DNA of 64,000 nucleotides, taken from sequence record NC_055733.1; one strand, written 5' to 3'. Under the pieces are notes generated by a model. That model ran no database searches, was not told the origin of the DNA, and worked only from the letters and a program-made list of their open reading frames with translations. Positions 19,022-64,000 of the stretch are shown piece by piece. The translations under genes and the position numbers were made by a program. The first letter of the stretch is position 1, and each line of letters starts with the position of its first letter.

Positions 19022-19699
19022 TTAAGCAGTGTACTTGGATTTGGAGTCAATTGCAATGATATAGCTTGCAGTTGCACCCTTGAAACAGATTGCTCCTTCT
19101 TTTGCGATCATCACGGTATATTTGCCGTCGATCATCTTCATGTTACCAATCGCAACGATGAAATCAAAAGTAGCGTCGTCTCCTTCGAAGTCATCAGCAA
19201 TAGCAATCTCAAAGCTGTTGGAGTTGCTTTCGCCGCCGGTCAGACGAGCGATAATCTTACGACCGTCGTTGACAAAGTGCAGATCTACCAGGGACATAGT
19301 AGAGGCAGATTTGTCGATTTGTTTCAGTTGCTCGGCAGTAATCTCGAACACAACGGAAGCAGTTGGCATGGTCAGTGCTTTCTTCGGATGTGCGATAGTA
19401 CCGGCTTCTGCCATTTTGATTTTTGCCATAGCTTTGCCACCGGATGCATTCTTGATAGTGATATATTCACCGTCTTCGGTAACATCAGCAGGCAGACCAA
19501 CCATCGCAGCAACACCCAAGAATTCACCGAGGCTGTAGATTCGCAGCTCGCTATCTACGGTATCTTTGATGGTGCTTTCGGCATACAGAACGTTGTTCAC
19601 GCTCTTGGTGTTGACGAAAGTACCCGGTTTCAGTACCACAGACGGGTTAATTTTTGCGAAGTTAGACAGGATTTCTACGGTTTCTTTGCTCAGTTGCAT
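19022..19699 (-). CDS. 45: sliding clamp
   Basis: MQLSKETVEILSNFAKINPSVVLKPG resembles T4 gp45; synteny. Confidence 0.93.
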   Translation of the reverse strand: MQLSKETVEILSNFAKINPSVVLKPGTFVNTKSVNNVLYAESTIKDTVDSELRIYSLGEFLGVAAMVGLPADVTEDGEYITIKNASGGKAMAKIKMAEAGTIAHPKKALTMPTASVVFEITAEQLKQIDKSASTMSLVDLHFVNDGRKIIARLTGGESNSNSFEIAIADDFEGDDATFDFIVAIGNMKMIDGKYTVMIAKEGAICFKGATASYIIAIDSKSKYTA

Positions 19700-33753: not shown

Positions 33754-33771
33754 TAGGGGCCGAAGCCCCTA
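33754..33771 (-). terminator. UUCG hairpin between nrdA and nrdB
   Basis: taggggc-ttcg-gcccct. Confidence 0.6.
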
Positions 33772-49391: not shown

Positions 49392-49882
49392 TCAACTGAT
49401 TTTTCCACAATTTTTATGCTCTTTACATTGCGTTGTTGTGTAGCCGTCAAACACAGAACGAGCACGATAATAGTCCTTAGCTGTGAATCCGTTCACACTA
49501 TCAACGTGAATGAAATTTTGCTTTTGTGACTCCAACATGTCGTCGTCATCGTCAACAATCACATAATTCTCACATTCTTGATGTTTGTTCAGCCACTCTT
49601 GAATCAACTCTCCGCGATTTTCACCAACAAGATCTCTTGTTTTGAAATCCTCATGTAAGCATTCGGGAGGGAATCCTGCCATAGCAAGTTGATCCTTCAC
49701 CATCTGCAAATCACATCCAAGTCTCCAAGTGCTACTGTATACCACTTTCAAACCGTAGTCAACGATTAGTTGGATAAAAGCTTTACAGCTCCTATGTCTA
49801 CCATTTGTCCGTATTTCAAGTAACTGCTATCGCTATGAAATACTCCGTCAACATCGAGAAACAATACACGGCATTTTTTCAT
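49392..49882 (-). CDS. HAD-family phosphatase (RNA-repair-like HAD type), apparent 1-nt deletion near 49775
   Basis: FLDVDGV motif I, VVYSSTWR, RGELI..WL and YVIVDD; ATGA-coupled to the methyltransferase. Confidence 0.8.
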
Positions 49883-51126
49883 ACGTCAAGAGTCCACATC
49901 GTATCTTTCAGCCAATCTGGATACTTTCTACCGTCGCTGGTGTCAGTCTCGTCTAATGTGTTGCAATAAGCGATTTGATTTTCGATTTGAGTTCGGTATT
50001 CCTCTCCCAAAATCTTCACCAATCGCTCTATGGCAGCGTTTCTATTGTCCAGCATATACTCACAAGCGTATATACGAGAAACGATTGTACCAGCGTTCTG
50101 GCCTGCTTCCAGCATACGTTTCACGATACCTTCGAGTATGTTACCGTCACCGCATGAAGGCTCAAAGAAAGTCGAACTGGAATCCGGATCATCTATGTCG
50201 GTATGATCCAACATCTGATTTACGAGTTCAATCGGAGTGAAAAACTCGGCAGTTTTCTTCTGACGATCTCTATCAATCTTATCGGTAAACATCCTGGTAT
50301 CACCAACGACTTGCGTTTTGTGACGCTTACCGCCATAGTAATCTTCGATTACTTCTGGAACCCTAGATTTGATATCAAGCATATCGAATTTTTCGAATAG
50401 CTCGTCATCTGTCCAACGCTTCGTCATGTCTACCCATGGAATTGCATGTAGCTCTCCACTATCTAGGTGAACATTCATCTTATACAGAGAAAGCATGAAT
50501 CTTGCAAAGTCCGTTTTCAGATAAGCAATAAAATTCTCTGCCTCTTCTAATGTCTTGAATGCGAAATTAGTGCCACGTTTAGGCATTTCCGTAGTTGGAA
50601 TGTAGTCAACTGGGAACATGGTAAAGAAGTCTGAATTAAAGCGTTTGCCAGCTTCTGGCGGGTGTCCTCTAACACTTGCTATAGTGACGTAGTGACTCGC
50701 ATCACTAACTTCACCAGAGCAGGCATGATGCGCTACAGACTGAATTGGAAATCTGTCATACAGTTTAACACACCAATCGCCAATCATATTCAGACGATTG
50801 ATAGGCAGTCTAGCGTCATAGTAGCCAGACACATTAATCAGACCAGCTTTCATTGTTTTGTCAATAACGGTTATACTAAGCGGAGTCAAAAACCCGGCTT
50901 TGAAAACGGCATTACCGTCAAACAGATGAACACTTGTTGTATATGTTTTCATGTTGTCGAGTAGTTCGGCAACTCGTTTTGTTTGTCGCGTTGGCTTTCT
51001 GTTAATAAAAGGTCCAGACGGATGCACAGCGATAGTAACATCACATTTCTTTACACCTAAGTTAACAAAGTCAACGTGCAAACCAGCACTATATGGCGGG
51101 TTTGCAATCATATAATCAAAGTGCAT
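49879..51126 (-). CDS. amino-DNA methyltransferase, circularly permuted (IV-TRD-X-I order)
   Basis: N-terminal IANPPY; C-terminal EFFTP, FEPSCGDGN and YACE. Confidence 0.85.
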   Translation of the reverse strand: MHFDYMIANPPYSAGLHVDFVNLGVKKCDVTIAVHPSGPFINRKPTRQTKRVAELLDNMKTYTTSVHLFDGNAVFKAGFLTPLSITVIDKTMKAGLINVSGYYDARLPINRLNMIGDWCVKLYDRFPIQSVAHHACSGEVSDASHYVTIASVRGHPPEAGKRFNSDFFTMFPVDYIPTTEMPKRGTNFAFKTLEEAENFIAYLKTDFARFMLSLYKMNVHLDSGELHAIPWVDMTKRWTDDELFEKFDMLDIKSRVPEVIEDYYGGKRHKTQVVGDTRMFTDKIDRDRQKKTAEFFTPIELVNQMLDHTDIDDPDSSSTFFEPSCGDGNILEGIVKRMLEAGQNAGTIVSRIYACEYMLDNRNAAIERLVKILGEEYRTQIENQIAYCNTLDETDTSDGRKYPDWLKDTMWTLDV

Positions 51127-51811
51127 GAGTGCTCAGACGTTCTCCGTATTCGCGATCCATGCCGTATTCTTTTGCTATCTTCATAATAGCGATGTTCATT
51201 TTTACCAGCTTATCACGTTCCACGATGTAATCATTCATCATTACATCGAGTTCATGAGATTGGCGACGTCTGATCTCCGATTCAATTTGTTTGATTTGAA
51301 GTTTCAAGATATCGGTAGAAACTTCTTTGATATCCTTTTCCACTTTAGCAATGATCTCCGGTTTCTGTTGCTTAGGCTGTTTTTGTAGCAGATCGATTTT
51401 GCGCTCAGGAATTCGAACGTTCATCTTGAATCCATATTCGGTGCGCTTTGCTGCGAAAGGAGAAAATGCTTTCATTTGTTCGATCATTTTGTCCACAATC
51501 GACTGACTACCACGGCTGAACTCAAACTCAACGATATTAACAACGATGCCTTCGCCAAGTTTCGTTACATTAACACCCATCAACTCCGGGCACTGACCGT
51601 CTTCAATATACGCGCCAAACAATTCGTTTAGATGCGCTTTGCTGAATGAGCGGCTACCGATCATCGATTCTGTATAGCGTCTGATGTTTTTGCGGAACTT
51701 CGCTGGGTCGATATCGACTTTAGTTCCAGCTGGCTTGGAATGGGTTTCGCAAGCAATATTCAGGAATTTGTACCACTGATTACGCGCAACTAGCTTCCGT
51801 TTTTCGTTCAT
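51116..51811 (-). CDS. hypothetical protein with C-terminal coiled coil (231 aa)
   Basis: SD GGAG. Confidence 0.7.
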   Translation of the reverse strand: MNEKRKLVARNQWYKFLNIACETHSKPAGTKVDIDPAKFRKNIRRYTESMIGSRSFSKAHLNELFGAYIEDGQCPELMGVNVTKLGEGIVVNIVEFEFSRGSQSIVDKMIEQMKAFSPFAAKRTEYGFKMNVRIPERKIDLLQKQPKQQKPEIIAKVEKDIKEVSTDILKLQIKQIESEIRRRQSHELDVMMNDYIVERDKLVKMNIAIMKIAKEYGMDREYGERLSTHAL

Positions 51812-51839
51812 GATATCTCCTATAAGAGGGCCGAAGCCC

Positions 51840-52040
51840 TCAAATGTCAAACAGTGATGCAAGTCCTGGATGCTGTGGGAACTTCACATGTTTGGTGTTT
51901 TTGTCAATTGCCAATCCGGTTTGTTTAACAAACGCATCGAACTTTTCTTTAGAAGCAAAACGAACTTTGATCGTCCGTTTGCCACTCTTCATTTTCTCGA
52001 TTACGTGTTCCGGTGCGGCATCTGGGTTAACATATGCCAT
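51840..52040 (-). CDS. small protein related to the glycosyltransferase N-terminal domain (66 aa)
   Basis: IKVRFASKEKFDAFVKQTG..I..NTKHVKFP versus IEFEFDNNDDVAEFSKLAD..L..KTKSIWWP; TAATG coupling. Confidence 0.65.
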   Translation of the reverse strand: MAYVNPDAAPEHVIEKMKSGKRTIKVRFASKEKFDAFVKQTGLAIDKNTKHVKFPQHPGLASLFDI

Positions 52041-53239
52041 TATTCTTCCTCGTCGTTAGCGTCTTGTTCGGACGCTTTGATAGATGTTAGCACCATTCCG
52101 TATTCATTGCAACCTTCCGGAATAACATTTTTCAGTTTCAGACGATTAGAACGATACGGTGCATAGTCTACCCAGTGGTGCCAGCGACCGTTCATCCACT
52201 GCAATCTGGCAACGTCTGGATGCATGTCCACAATCATTTGCGACTTAGGCAGAGTACCTTCTTTTGAATAGAAAGCTTCTGTGTTACCGCCTGCCATCGC
52301 TTGAGTAACGAGTTTACCAGTCAAGAAAGCGTTATATTGAATCGTGCAATGACCGTCTTTCAAAACACGCAGGCTCAAATCGGTATCTTCGTTATAGCGA
52401 CCTCTCCAACGATACGGGATATCATTGAGAATCAACAGAGTGCTATAAATCCGACAGTTTTGAACGAACGGAGGCAACGACTCTTTCGGCACAGCAAAGA
52501 AGCGATAATGCGGACCAGCGATATAGACGTTTTCATAACGATCAACGTGATCTTCCATAGCACGGAAGATCGCGCCACTGTTAACGATTGTGCGCTTGTT
52601 TCCGTCAAGACGGAAGAAGTGTTGTTGGTTATCGTCCATTACCCAGTGACGCTTGAACCCCATTTTCATAGAGTGTTCCCAAGCAAAGTTACGAGCAGCG
52701 CCTGGACCCTTGCTTCGAGTGTTACCGAGATTATCAAATGTATCATATTCGTCAAGATATTTCTGATCAAGAATGATAACGGTCACATATTCATGATCAA
52801 CGCGGCTGTTATATTCTTCGAATTGAGATTCTTCTACAACGATATAATGCTTGACTTTCATACGCACCAAACTATCGGAAGTCAATCGCTTTTCCCATCG
52901 GGATTTTGATACGATGTAAATCGGATATTTTGGCTGATTCAAATCGGTGTAATCAGATACATACCGAATCACGGAGTAATCGTCTGGACCTTTCTTCGGC
53001 CACCAAATGCTCTTTGTCTTGTCACTTAACGGCAAGTCTGCGAGCTTAGAAAACTCGGCAACATCATCGTTATTATCGAACTCGAATTCAATCTCGGCAT
53101 AAGCGTCGATGATATCTTTCGGCTCATAGTGTGGCATTTGCTGCCAGTGGTCCCATGGATTATCTTCGTTGGCATATCGCTCATTGCGATAAATCAAATT
53201 GCCATCTAAGTCTCTTGTTTTTTCTACTTGTTTGCGCAT
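52040..53239 (-). CDS. GT-A fold glycosyltransferase (TET-associated/GREB1-like family)
   Basis: PIYIVSKSR, GAARN, HWVMDD, YSTLLILN, YNEDTDLSLR and GGNT. Confidence 0.8.
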   Translation of the reverse strand: MRKQVEKTRDLDGNLIYRNERYANEDNPWDHWQQMPHYEPKDIIDAYAEIEFEFDNNDDVAEFSKLADLPLSDKTKSIWWPKKGPDDYSVIRYVSDYTDLNQPKYPIYIVSKSRWEKRLTSDSLVRMKVKHYIVVEESQFEEYNSRVDHEYVTVIILDQKYLDEYDTFDNLGNTRSKGPGAARNFAWEHSMKMGFKRHWVMDDNQQHFFRLDGNKRTIVNSGAIFRAMEDHVDRYENVYIAGPHYRFFAVPKESLPPFVQNCRIYSTLLILNDIPYRWRGRYNEDTDLSLRVLKDGHCTIQYNAFLTGKLVTQAMAGGNTEAFYSKEGTLPKSQMIVDMHPDVARLQWMNGRWHHWVDYAPYRSNRLKLKNVIPEGCNEYGMVLTSIKASEQDANDEEE

Positions 53240-62772: not shown

Positions 62773-63273
62773 TCAAATATCGAAAAGATTTTCTAAAGAA
62801 TTTTGCTTTACTATGCCACGAGCTTCTAACAGCCAGTCTGGATATTTTCTACCCTCGCTGATATCAGTGTGATCGATTGTGTTACAATACGCAATGTTAT
62901 TCAGCGCAATATCTCGGATTTCATCTGTCTGCCAATCACTGGTTAGATTGAGTTCAGCTAATAACGCTCCAATTCGAGCTATAATCGCTTCCCAGTTATC
63001 TCGCATATACTCACAAGCATAAACATCGGAAACAGCTTGGATCGCGTTGGACCGAGTTACGCCGGCTTTCTTGATCTTACGCTCGATAACTCTAACAACA
63101 AAATTACCGTCGCCAGCAGCAGGCTCAAACATGGTAACGCCGAGATTATCCACGTCCGATACCATATCAATCATATGATCAACGATATGAATAGGAGTAA
63201 AAACTTCGTCGGTTTTCTTTTGTCGATCACGACTGATTGGACCAGTAAACGTTCTCGCATCATCTTTTATCAT
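62773..63273 (-). CDS. SAM-binding half (motifs X, I-III) of a split amino-DNA methyltransferase
   Basis: RDRQKKTDEVFTP, FEPAAGDGN, YACEYM and IAYCNT...GRKYPDWL; paralogous to the C-terminal third of 49879-51126. Confidence 0.85.
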   Translation of the reverse strand: MIKDDARTFTGPISRDRQKKTDEVFTPIHIVDHMIDMVSDVDNLGVTMFEPAAGDGNFVVRVIERKIKKAGVTRSNAIQAVSDVYACEYMRDNWEAIIARIGALLAELNLTSDWQTDEIRDIALNNIAYCNTIDHTDISEGRKYPDWLLEARGIVKQNSLENLFDI

Positions 63274-63285
63274 AATTATCTCCAA

Positions 63286-63308
63286 AGAAAAAGGGGCCGC
63301 AGCCCCTT
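63286..63308 (-). terminator. intrinsic terminator-like hairpin between the two methyltransferase halves
   Basis: aaggggc-tgcg-gcccctt-ttt. Confidence 0.7.
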
Positions 63309-63312
63309 TATA

Positions 63313-63999
63313 TTATCGTACCAATTCAGCAAAATCAACCGGAATTGCATTTCTTTGTTCTTCGGTGATGCCAAAATGGTTGAACAACTTTTCATCGTCC
63401 CAAGACTGGGTGAAATCAAGCCACGGAATGGATTTCAACTCACCTCGGTGTAGATTTCCGTTCATTTTCAGCGTTGCCAGACACGAGCGAAAAAAGAGTG
63501 TTTTGGTATACGATAGGAAATTGTCTGCCTCTTCCTTGGTAGAAAATTCCCAAGATAACCAGCTATTGTTAGTCAGTCTTGAATCCGATACTACCGCATT
63601 TGTAAATCGTTTCCATAGAGTACATACGAACCATTTTCCATTTTTGTATTCCGGTTCGTTATCTCCATTCATATACTTATGATCATCAACGCTATCCGCG
63701 AACGTGATATTATAAAATGGAAGAAGCCATTCGCCGTACATGTTTACTTGATCTATCGTTTCGGCTGTGTATTTTCCATGTTTTGCAATAACTCGAACGC
63801 GATCCAACTTCGTGAGCTTATTGATATAGGTAATTCCAACCGGAGACGAAATATCAGCAGAGAAACAATCAAATCCGATATATTCCCATGAGCAGTCATA
63901 TTTGGAAACATATGTTAGAAATGCCTTGGCATCATTAGAACGACGAACTTCCTTTCTGTTTGTGATTGTGCTACACGGATGAATAGCAACAACGCGATC
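63313..63999 (-). CDS. catalytic/TRD half of the split methyltransferase (5' end beyond the window)
   Basis: Frame open to the window edge: DRVVAIHPCSTITNRK...FSTKEEADNFLSYTKT...LKMNGNLHRGELKSIPWLDFTQSWDDEKLF; paralogous to the N-terminal two-thirds of 49879-51126. Confidence 0.82.
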   Translation of the reverse strand, partial: DRVVAIHPCSTITNRKEVRRSNDAKAFLTYVSKYDCSWEYIGFDCFSADISSPVGITYINKLTKLDRVRVIAKHGKYTAETIDQVNMYGEWLLPFYNITFADSVDDHKYMNGDNEPEYKNGKWFVCTLWKRFTNAVVSDSRLTNNSWLSWEFSTKEEADNFLSYTKTLFFRSCLATLKMNGNLHRGELKSIPWLDFTQSWDDEKLFNHFGITEEQRNAIPVDFAELVR

Positions 64000-64000
64000 T

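Follow-up and report, generated by a model that had tools for sequence, protein, structure and literature searches.

A glycosyltransferase and its small co-inherited partner in the early region of Aeromonas phage Ah1: a possible clamp-tethered route to DNA glycosylation

The segment at positions 49,392–53,239 of the window analysed here, which comprises bases 1–64000 of Aeromonas phage Ah1 (MG250483 / NC_055733; Straboviridae, Cinqassovirus; genome 221 kb), carries five consecutive minus-strand genes. They encode a glycosyltransferase (GT), a 66-aa partner protein, a 231-aa protein (p231), a circularly permuted methyltransferase of 415 aa (MT415) and a HAD-family phosphatase (HAD). The reading tentatively favoured here, with slightly less than even confidence, is that independent accessory modules form a mosaic in this stretch of an early region, and that GT and its partner perform clamp-tethered, replication-coupled DNA glycosylation. 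The 4-kb stretch matches MG250483 / NC_055733 with 100% identity at equal coordinates. The five genes lie where the original prediction, made from the letters alone, had placed them, consecutive and with overlapping stops and starts; what it overlooked is that the HAD gene is split. The elements on which the argument turns are the following.

52040–53239, minus strand: GT, a TAGT-family GT-A glycosyltransferase of 399 aa, identified by PF20691, phrog_842 and its AlphaFold2 fold.
51840–52040, minus strand: the 66-aa partner, a paralog of the GT N-terminal module with the C-terminal tail GLASLFDI; proposed clamp adaptor.
19022–19699, minus strand: the gp45 sliding clamp, annotated in both Ah1 records; proposed dock for the 66-aa partner and for gp103, a half-methyltransferase described below.

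The mosaic nature of the stretch is visible in the distribution of its genes. The five-gene order is common to Ah1, Aeh1, avDM12, phiAS5 and phiWae14, and phages PX29 and AsFcp keep the HAD–MT415–p231 order without GT and the 66-aa gene. At the position syntenic to 51840–53239, both encode a 392-aa protein (in PX29 gp085, L007:7428-8606) with a P-loop/ABC-like ATPase as its N-terminal half and a GNAT acetyltransferase as its C-terminal half, and the GT/partner site looks like a swap locus for alternative modifying enzymes. The GT–partner pair is found alone, with none of the other three genes, in Pectobacterium phage POP12 and at loci L009, L016–L018 and L051, a 167-kb T4-like contig among them. 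In phage 65 the GT gene maps to 108 kb and the MT415 homolog to 180 kb, a separation of 70 kb, and CC2-type phages have the methyltransferase only. By DNA identity, the nearest relatives of the stretch are avDM12-TAAL (94%) and Aeh1 (89%); the DNA-level match of PX29 and AsFcp is limited to the HAD–methyltransferase–p231 part, and that of phiAS5 and phiWae14 to the 66-aa–GT part. By this distribution, only GT and the 66-aa gene are co-inherited, and MT415, p231 and HAD are separate modules rather than parts of one pathway. The real functional unit would then be GT with its translationally coupled partner, a second module would consist of p231 and the circularly permuted adenine-type methyltransferase, and a third would be the HAD phosphatase, widespread in T4-like phages. 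The original prediction had joined all five genes in one modification pathway and had named a lack of co-conservation as the observation that would refute it; MT415, p231 and HAD are not co-conserved with GT, whereas the partner is.

GT truly belongs to the TAGT family of GT-A enzymes, as had been predicted. It matches the Pfam TAGT profile PF20691 with 153.6 bits (cut-off 27.5; E 9e-45) over residues 105–317, covering profile positions 1–204 of 205, and matches phrog_842 with an E value of 6e-68. An N-terminal extension of about 100 aa precedes the catalytic domain, which begins at residue 105. The AlphaFold2 model (predicted local distance difference test score 89, predicted template modelling score 0.88) has a GT-A fold, and a Foldseek search with it returned distant GT-A matches, namely GnT-I, ColGalT1, LARGE1, SpsA and Rv1525, at template modelling (TM) scores of 0.34–0.39. 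Residues R114, D202-D203-N204 and E284-D285 are invariant across 40 diverse homologs and, but for Asn at the third position of DDD, agree with the published active-site pattern of phage GT-A DNA glycosyltransferases, R...DDD...ED(Y/F) (Pyle et al. 2023 preprint; Burke et al. 2021). The subfamily is very large, with more than 7600 homologs, and its full-length members keep the extension of about 100 aa, which is missing from the shorter forms of about 290 aa. A PDB sequence search with GT gave no match, and PADLOC gave none for GT, the 66-aa partner, p231 or HAD. The N-terminal module of GT matched only other glycosyltransferases in tblastn, and in an Atlas search the GT N-terminus retrieved only a sub-threshold 75-aa cluster named "clamp loader subunit family" (score 0.77).

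The first base of the partner gene is also the final base of the stop codon of GT (TAATG), a 1-nt overlap, and every one of its homologs lies directly downstream of a GT gene, with an overlap of 1–4 nt or a 1-nt gap. The pair is kept in Aeh1-type phages, in POP12 and in five independent metagenomic lineages. When the partner family was compared with the GT N-termini by hhalign, the two aligned with 95.3% probability (E 2.3e-8), partner residues 18–59 corresponding to GT residues 44–85. On this profile evidence the partner is best described as a free-standing copy of a beta-alpha module of about 40 residues contained in the enzyme's own N-terminal extension. A functional tie between the two proteins is the natural reading of these data, and the suggestion that the small protein is real and belongs to GT has held, on the strength of constant adjacency and of paralogy at the profile level.

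The C-terminus of the partner points to where the pair may act. It reads GLASLFDI in Ah1 and Aeh1 and GLASIFEI in phiAS5, VSLDFLF in three clusters (P0123, P0125 and P0126) of the 167-kb lineage and GLDDFM in POP12; the remaining tails are DISKLFL, DITSILFG, DLFELG, DIFSLT and ELNFIEN. The Ah1 tail fits a hydrophobic (S/T/G)L-x-x-(L/F)(F/L) peptide at the extreme C-terminus. The DNA polymerase of T4, gp43, ends in SLDFLFG, T4 gp55 contains SLDFLYEAND, and the polymerases of Ah1 and POP12 end in SLSDLFGDM and SLDSIFGDF, respectively; in both of these phages the partner tail appears to resemble that of the phage's own polymerase. The T4 polymerase tail reportedly binds the sliding clamp. For gp33 and gp55, a C-terminal LDFL motif is the gp45-binding element (PMC9690074). 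As a consistency check, the tail motif was scanned against 562 Ah1 open reading frames (ORFs) of at least 60 aa and matched 10 of them (1.8%), the real genes among these being gp43, gp33, the partner, gp103, gp119 and gp26; apart from the accessory subunits, the only replication or transcription genes caught were the clamp clients gp43 and gp33. The partner tail is thus probably of the gp45-binding type and probably hooks GT to the replication clamp.

Other arrangements of similar elements were seen beyond the pair itself. In Ah1, gp119 (71878–72237, 119 aa, ending in SVDFFKETE; locus L004) overlaps the start of gp118 (70928–71881), an RlaP-family nucleotidyltransferase, and the two may be a further case of an enzyme next to a small clamp-tailed protein; in L009 and POP12, too, RlaP genes are found close to GT. 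Vibrio phage Kuja (Ackermannviridae; L013:5788-8476) has a tandem pair of TAGT paralogs without a partner, both carrying SYLEE(N/K)(F/Y)L near the C-terminus, which could be a clamp-type tail fused directly onto the enzyme. The GT of phage 65 (L044:3300-4496) contains an extra partner-like block (ILIRFDNDVDLKLF...) in its N-terminal extension, before the TKSIWFP block, and is not followed by a partner gene of its own. On the JGI T4-like contig L051 (4800-12213), TAGT and partner are followed by a GT-B enzyme (Glycos_transf_1) and an Anp1-like transferase, an arrangement which suggests that the phage of this contig builds a multi-sugar chain.

A second group of small subunits with comparable tails was found among the methyltransferases of the window, for which the following features are relevant.

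49879–51126, minus strand: MT415, a circularly permuted amino-methyltransferase of 415 aa, identified by its motifs and its alignment with 7vru.
62773–63273, minus strand: gp103, a stand-alone half-methyltransferase of 166 aa (motifs X-I-II-III), paralogous to MT415 and ending in SLENLFDI.
63313–64000, minus strand, extending to 64950 beyond the window: gp104, the large subunit (NPPF and recognition region) of a split methyltransferase, by paralogy to MT415.

MT415, whose gene overlaps that of p231 by 11 nt, opens with motif IV (FDYMIANPPY at residues 3–12, with NPPY at 9–12), continues with a target-recognition region and closes with motifs X-I-II-III (EFFTP...EPSCGDG at residues 294–330, with EPSCGDG at 322–328). 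These blocks align to residues 270–281 and 164–211 of the adenine methyltransferase 7vru in swapped order, and therefore the circular permutation, which had been predicted, is real. The motifs X (FFTP), I (EPxCGxG) and IV (NPPY) are shared with Type I HsdM (7vru) and with Eco57I/TaqI-like gamma-type N6-adenine methyltransferases, but the order in MT415 is permuted (IV ... X-I-III), and Ah1 has in addition a two-polypeptide version, gp104 plus gp103. Against Pfam N6_Mtase (PF02384) MT415 scores 19.8 bits, just under the cut-off of 20.4, and its CC2 ortholog, at 29.3 bits, lies above it; PADLOC MTase_II matches MT415 with an E value of 9.5e-6. The S-adenosylmethionine-binding and catalytic motifs are all preserved, which makes activity as an N6-adenine DNA methyltransferase the most likely role of MT415.

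The split enzyme reproduces MT415 in two pieces. gp103 is 49% identical to MT415 residues 276–406 (E 2e-38), and its upstream neighbour gp104 is 31% identical to residues 1–251 (E 1e-32), so that MT415 is a fused paralog of the split enzyme. gp103 and the 66-aa partner are the only two Ah1 gene products that end in LFDI. The two-gene layout recurs in Vibrio phage phi-ST2 and Klebsiella phage KpV477, where the small subunits have the C-termini GLASFFD... and NLDFFFE; further homologs of gp103 end in TLDFLGI, NLEFLF, SLEDLLG, SVEDFFE and SIEDFW. A tail of the LDF/EDF type is present in about eight of 12 homologous small subunits when judged by eye and in six of the 12 by a stricter regular expression. 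Two unrelated DNA-modifying systems of T4-like phages thus appear to have acquired clamp-type tails on their small subunits. The large subunits of phi-ST2 and KpV477 also bear an N-terminal LEM-3-like GIY-YIG nuclease domain.

The nature of the GT acceptor was approached through the enzymes that supply acceptors in known systems. With T4 gp42, gp56, alpha-glucosyltransferase (alpha-GT), beta-glucosyltransferase (beta-GT) and Dam as queries, tblastn against the first 213 kb of Ah1 gave a single match, between gp42 and td at 23% identity; the last 8 kb were checked for the same genes by annotation only. The td product scores 289 bits against the NCBIfam thymidylate-synthase equivalog (cut-off 108) and retains the catalytic PCH together with the Asp and Asn equivalent to E. 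coli D169 and N177, residues by which true ThyA is told apart from 5-hydroxy-dCMP synthases and dCMP-specific enzymes (PMC13326640). By these residues td, the only ThyA of Ah1, is canonical. Likewise, Petrov et al. 2010 listed Aeh1 among phages without genes 42 and 56. No dioxygenase of the TET/JBP type is annotated in the 221-kb genome, as judged by reading the annotation rather than by a profile scan of every ORF. In Ah1, then, none of the sources of hydroxymethylated or hydroxylated pyrimidines with which such a GT might be genomically associated (TET/JBP, a gp42-type ThyA homolog, a primary alpha- or beta-GT) was found. The absence of TET/JBP and hydroxymethylase genes that the original prediction had noted for the window accordingly extends to the whole Ah1 genome, for the oxidase by annotation. 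With gp42, gp56, alpha- and beta-GT and an annotated dioxygenase absent, the classical substrates of the TAGT family are missing and the acceptor of GT must be non-canonical; it cannot be gp42-made hydroxymethylcytosine (hmC), because Ah1 lacks that pathway. Of the non-canonical glycosylation pathway proposed earlier, the non-canonical acceptor stands, given the lack of known hydroxymethyl routes, and the single five-gene pathway does not. Literature searches for restriction-digest or nucleoside data on Aeh1-type DNA found none.

It is attractive to suppose that the partner tail would dock on gp45 clamps left behind the fork on newly made DNA, and that the partner would hold GT through pairing of their two homologous N-terminal modules. 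Sugar transfer would thereby be coupled to replication, and DNA would be glycosylated as it is synthesized, as has been suggested for T4 alpha-glucosyltransferase. The more general proposal, that T4-like phages lacking hmC (the Aeh1 group, POP12 and many uncultured ones) glycosylate their DNA on an undescribed acceptor by means of a gp45 adaptor of 60–75 aa, and that split adenine methyltransferases are clamp-tailed in the same manner, is possible but distinctly more doubtful.

Could all five genes nevertheless serve one hypermodification pathway, with the methyltransferase and p231 generating or marking the acceptor base, HAD providing or trimming the sugar donor, and GT and partner attaching the sugar? 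Adjacency on a single strand, overlapping stop and start codons, the gene order kept in Ah1, Aeh1, avDM12, phiAS5 and phiWae14, and the participation of HAD phosphatases in sugar-donor synthesis in RB69 and DLP3 (PMC13326640) would speak for such an arrangement. It is very improbable, given that PX29 and AsFcp hold MT415, p231 and HAD without GT, that POP12, L009, L016–L018 and L051 hold GT and partner without the other three, and that 70 kb separate GT from the methyltransferase in phage 65. HAD is moreover found in 310 records, most of them without this GT, and Ah1 p231 is nearer to that of PX29 (90%) than to that of Aeh1 (76%), which points to separate histories. An NPPY methyltransferase, finally, yields N-methyl groups and not glycosyl acceptors, and Ah1 has no annotated oxidase. 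The case is a caution that tightly packed, translationally coupled phage early genes do not necessarily belong to one pathway.

Clamp-tethered DNA glycosylation by the pair has difficulties of its own. The third Asp of the family DDD is Asn204 (DDN) throughout the GT subfamily, and no chemically plausible hydroxyl acceptor was identified on Ah1 DNA. A subfamily member is encoded in the 48-kb lambdoid Vibrio phage 1.076.O, between the portal and head-morphogenesis genes, and this phage has neither a clamp nor a partner nor an annotated base-hydroxymethylating enzyme; DNA is therefore unproven as the acceptor for the GT subfamily, and together with the context on L051 this case leaves room for a protein or glycan acceptor. 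As for the partner, BLASTP against GT gave no similarity, the paralogy emerging from the profile–profile comparison alone; its tails are short and varied, with five of nine failing a strict regular expression despite being hydrophobic; and the tail motif was written after the tails had been seen, so that the Ah1 scan is no test. Another reading is that GT acts on something other than DNA, such as a virion or replisome protein, the host envelope or a small molecule, its likeness to TAGT reflecting shared ancestry only. The lack of any known hydroxylated base made by the Ah1 genome and the genomic setting in 1.076.O fit this alternative, as do the GT-B and Anp1-like transferases that come next on L051, as in glycan-building clusters, and the nearest solved folds, which are protein- or glycan-directed GT-A enzymes, albeit at the low TM scores given above. 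It is nonetheless unlikely: all characterised members and relatives named in the literature consulted (the T2/T6 enzyme, 5mYOX-associated GT-A enzymes and, as a structural relative, JGT) act on DNA, the GT gene lies in an early region with no late-promoter motif in the 64-kb window, a DNA methyltransferase subunit uses the same type of tail, and the clamp-type tail of the partner would place the enzyme on DNA. That tail likewise lowers the standing of the protein or capsid acceptor contemplated by the original prediction. Alternatively, the 66-aa protein might be a chaperone, inhibitor or decoy of the GT N-terminal module, its hydrophobic C-terminus having another role or none. Such tails as DLFELG, DIFSLT and ELNFIEN, and the failure of several to match the strict motif, would be in keeping with this; in the monomer model of GT, residues 46–55, in the segment homologous to the partner, lack a strand to pair with, so that pairing of the modules is a guess. 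Even so, a non-adaptor role seems quite unlikely, since the tail of one lineage (SLDFLF) matches the T4 polymerase tail exactly, those of Ah1 and POP12 resemble their own polymerase tails, and an unrelated family of DNA-modifying subunits appears to have acquired the same kind of tail independently. Furthermore, the partner homologs with sufficient context (Aeh1-type, POP12, L009 and L051) occur in T4-like phages that encode, or would be expected to encode, gp45.

Among known systems, clamp-tethered glycosylation by the Ah1 pair can be compared with several. The beta-glucosyl-HMC-alpha-glucosyltransferase of T2 and T6 belongs to the same PF20691 family, has the same GT-A fold and, like Ah1 GT, is the product of an early-region gene of a T4-like phage. 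The T-even TAGT, however, extends glucosyl-hmC made by gp42 and alpha-GT, whereas Ah1 is devoid of gp42, gp56, alpha-GT and beta-GT; Ah1 GT adds an N-terminal module of about 100 aa, DDN in place of the described DDD and a dedicated small partner, and the T-even TAGT gene was not retrieved at E 1e-10 in the Ah1 GT homolog search. The GT-A enzymes associated with TET/5mYOX and C5-methyltransferases share the fold, the R...DD...ED pattern and the prediction that they act on DNA after its replication (Pyle et al. 2023 preprint; Burke et al. 2021). They act on 5-hydroxymethylcytosine produced by a C5-methyltransferase and a dioxygenase; in contrast, the neighbour of Ah1 GT is an NPPY amino-methyltransferase that is not co-inherited, and no dioxygenase is annotated. 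T4 alpha-glucosyltransferase co-purifies with gp45 (PMC13216743; Sommer 2004 cited there) and thus shares with the proposed Ah1 pair the idea of a clamp-riding DNA sugar transferase, but its fold is GT-B, its contact with gp45 is direct and its C-terminus is not LDFL-like, whereas Ah1 would use a separate 66-aa subunit. T4 gp43, gp33 and gp55 have a hydrophobic peptide of the (S/T)LDFL(F/Y) type at the extreme C-terminus, as does the Ah1 partner; the carriers in T4 are replication and transcription factors, and those in Ah1 are accessory subunits of DNA-modifying enzymes.

Solitary TAGTs are themselves already known: in a 2026 survey of 753 phages with TAGT homologs, 288 had a single such gene and neither alpha- nor beta-GT, and its function was left undefined (PMC13216743). 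In the literature searched there was no report of the partner, of its paralogy to the GT N-terminal module, of the clamp-type tails or of a split and fused pair of permuted methyltransferases. Ah1, Aeh1 and phiAS5 are cultured, sequenced phages in which TAGT cannot use classical hmC, and they offer a testable handle on solitary TAGTs, with the small partner hinting at where and when GT acts. If DNA is indeed modified, the pair would represent a new hypermodification route, with a bearing on evasion of restriction and CRISPR and on aquaculture applications of Aeromonas phages. Should the adaptor bind gp45, the list of phage clamp clients would widen to DNA-modifying enzymes, and the sliding clamp might prove to be a general tool-belt for such enzymes in phages.

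Every gene of the window is encoded by the minus strand, and its 64 kb contain no copy of the T4 late-promoter motif TATAAATA, where 2.6 would be expected by chance, in keeping with a region of early or middle transcription. The remaining three features of the stretch are as follows.

51116–51811, minus strand: p231, 231 aa, starting 28 nt after the 66-aa gene; no family match.
49392–49882, minus strand: HAD-family phosphatase, split in the Ah1 record into ORFs 49766–49882 and 49392–49751; identified by PF18143 and phrog_1818.
51826–51841, minus strand: hairpin GAGGGC-UUCG-GCCCUC, beginning in the partner's stop codon at the junction of the 66-aa gene and p231.

The N-terminal half of p231 is globular and conserved, its C-terminal half coiled-coil-like; Pfam, NCBIfam and PADLOC gave no match to the protein. 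An exhaustive HMMER search of 1.84 billion representatives returned four related clusters and one coiled-coil artefact, and an ESM Atlas search no usable match (best score 0.51). Kinship with gp081 or gp082 was considered and set aside, the resemblance being weak and N-terminal (E 0.03 and 0.2, respectively). The protein is restricted to Aeromonas T4-like phages and evolves rapidly: Ah1 p231 is 90% identical to that of PX29, 76% to that of the congener Aeh1 and 30% to that of phiAS5, a phage in which GT is 92% and MT415 70% identical to the Ah1 proteins. Its greater closeness to PX29 than to Aeh1 implies recombination inside the cluster. Metagenomic relatives with 99% identity in the methyltransferase diverge at dozens of sites, and by indels, within p231 (51250–51700), which by all appearances is a diversification hot spot. 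A search for sequencing runs of the Ah1 isolate returned none, and these comparisons draw on metagenomes that contain its close relatives.

The HAD start is joined to the MT415 stop by an ATGA overlap. The C-terminal piece (49392–49751) matches PF18143 with 54.3 bits (cut-off 27.5; E 2.4e-14), and the nucleophile motif DVDG lies in the N-terminal piece (49766–49882); a PDB sequence search with the protein gave only spurious armadillo-repeat matches. Alignment with Aeh1 and avDM12 shows that the frame is broken by the loss of one A next to 49769 (AAA to AA). The gene is intact, at 161–163 aa, in Aeh1, avDM12, PX29 and phiAS5, and the extra base after 49769 is present in contigs from all four of four independent metagenome runs. 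The frameshift is likely a sequencing error, the more so because the Ah1 record also splits gp23, gp8, gp54 and wac; gene 60 is split as well, and so many split genes suggest several indel errors in the assembly. The fold, the DxD motif and an acidic motif IV are common to the Ah1 enzyme, to HAD_SAK_2 and to the HAD phosphatases of the arabinosylation clusters of RB69 and DLP3; unlike RB69 and DLP3, Ah1 has no sugar-nucleotide synthesis genes near HAD. The homologs in 310 phage records include those of RB16/RB43, Slopekvirus, Cronobacter and KVP40-like phages without this GT, a breadth of distribution that argues against a role specific to glycosylation.

The hairpin at the junction of the 66-aa gene and p231 is invariant in Ah1, Aeh1, avDM12 and phiAS5, and its flanks vary. 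Its GGGC-UUCG-GCCC core occurs in three copies in the window against 0.06 expected, the other two lying in the nrdA–nrdB interval (33757–33768) and, with one mismatch, in the gp104–gp103 interval (63294–63305). A role as an operon boundary was rejected, since the latter copy separates two genes whose products must work together. The folding z-score of the hairpin at 51826–51841 is only -1.95; as a recurrent intergenic feature, it is probably an element that stabilises mRNA or tunes expression.

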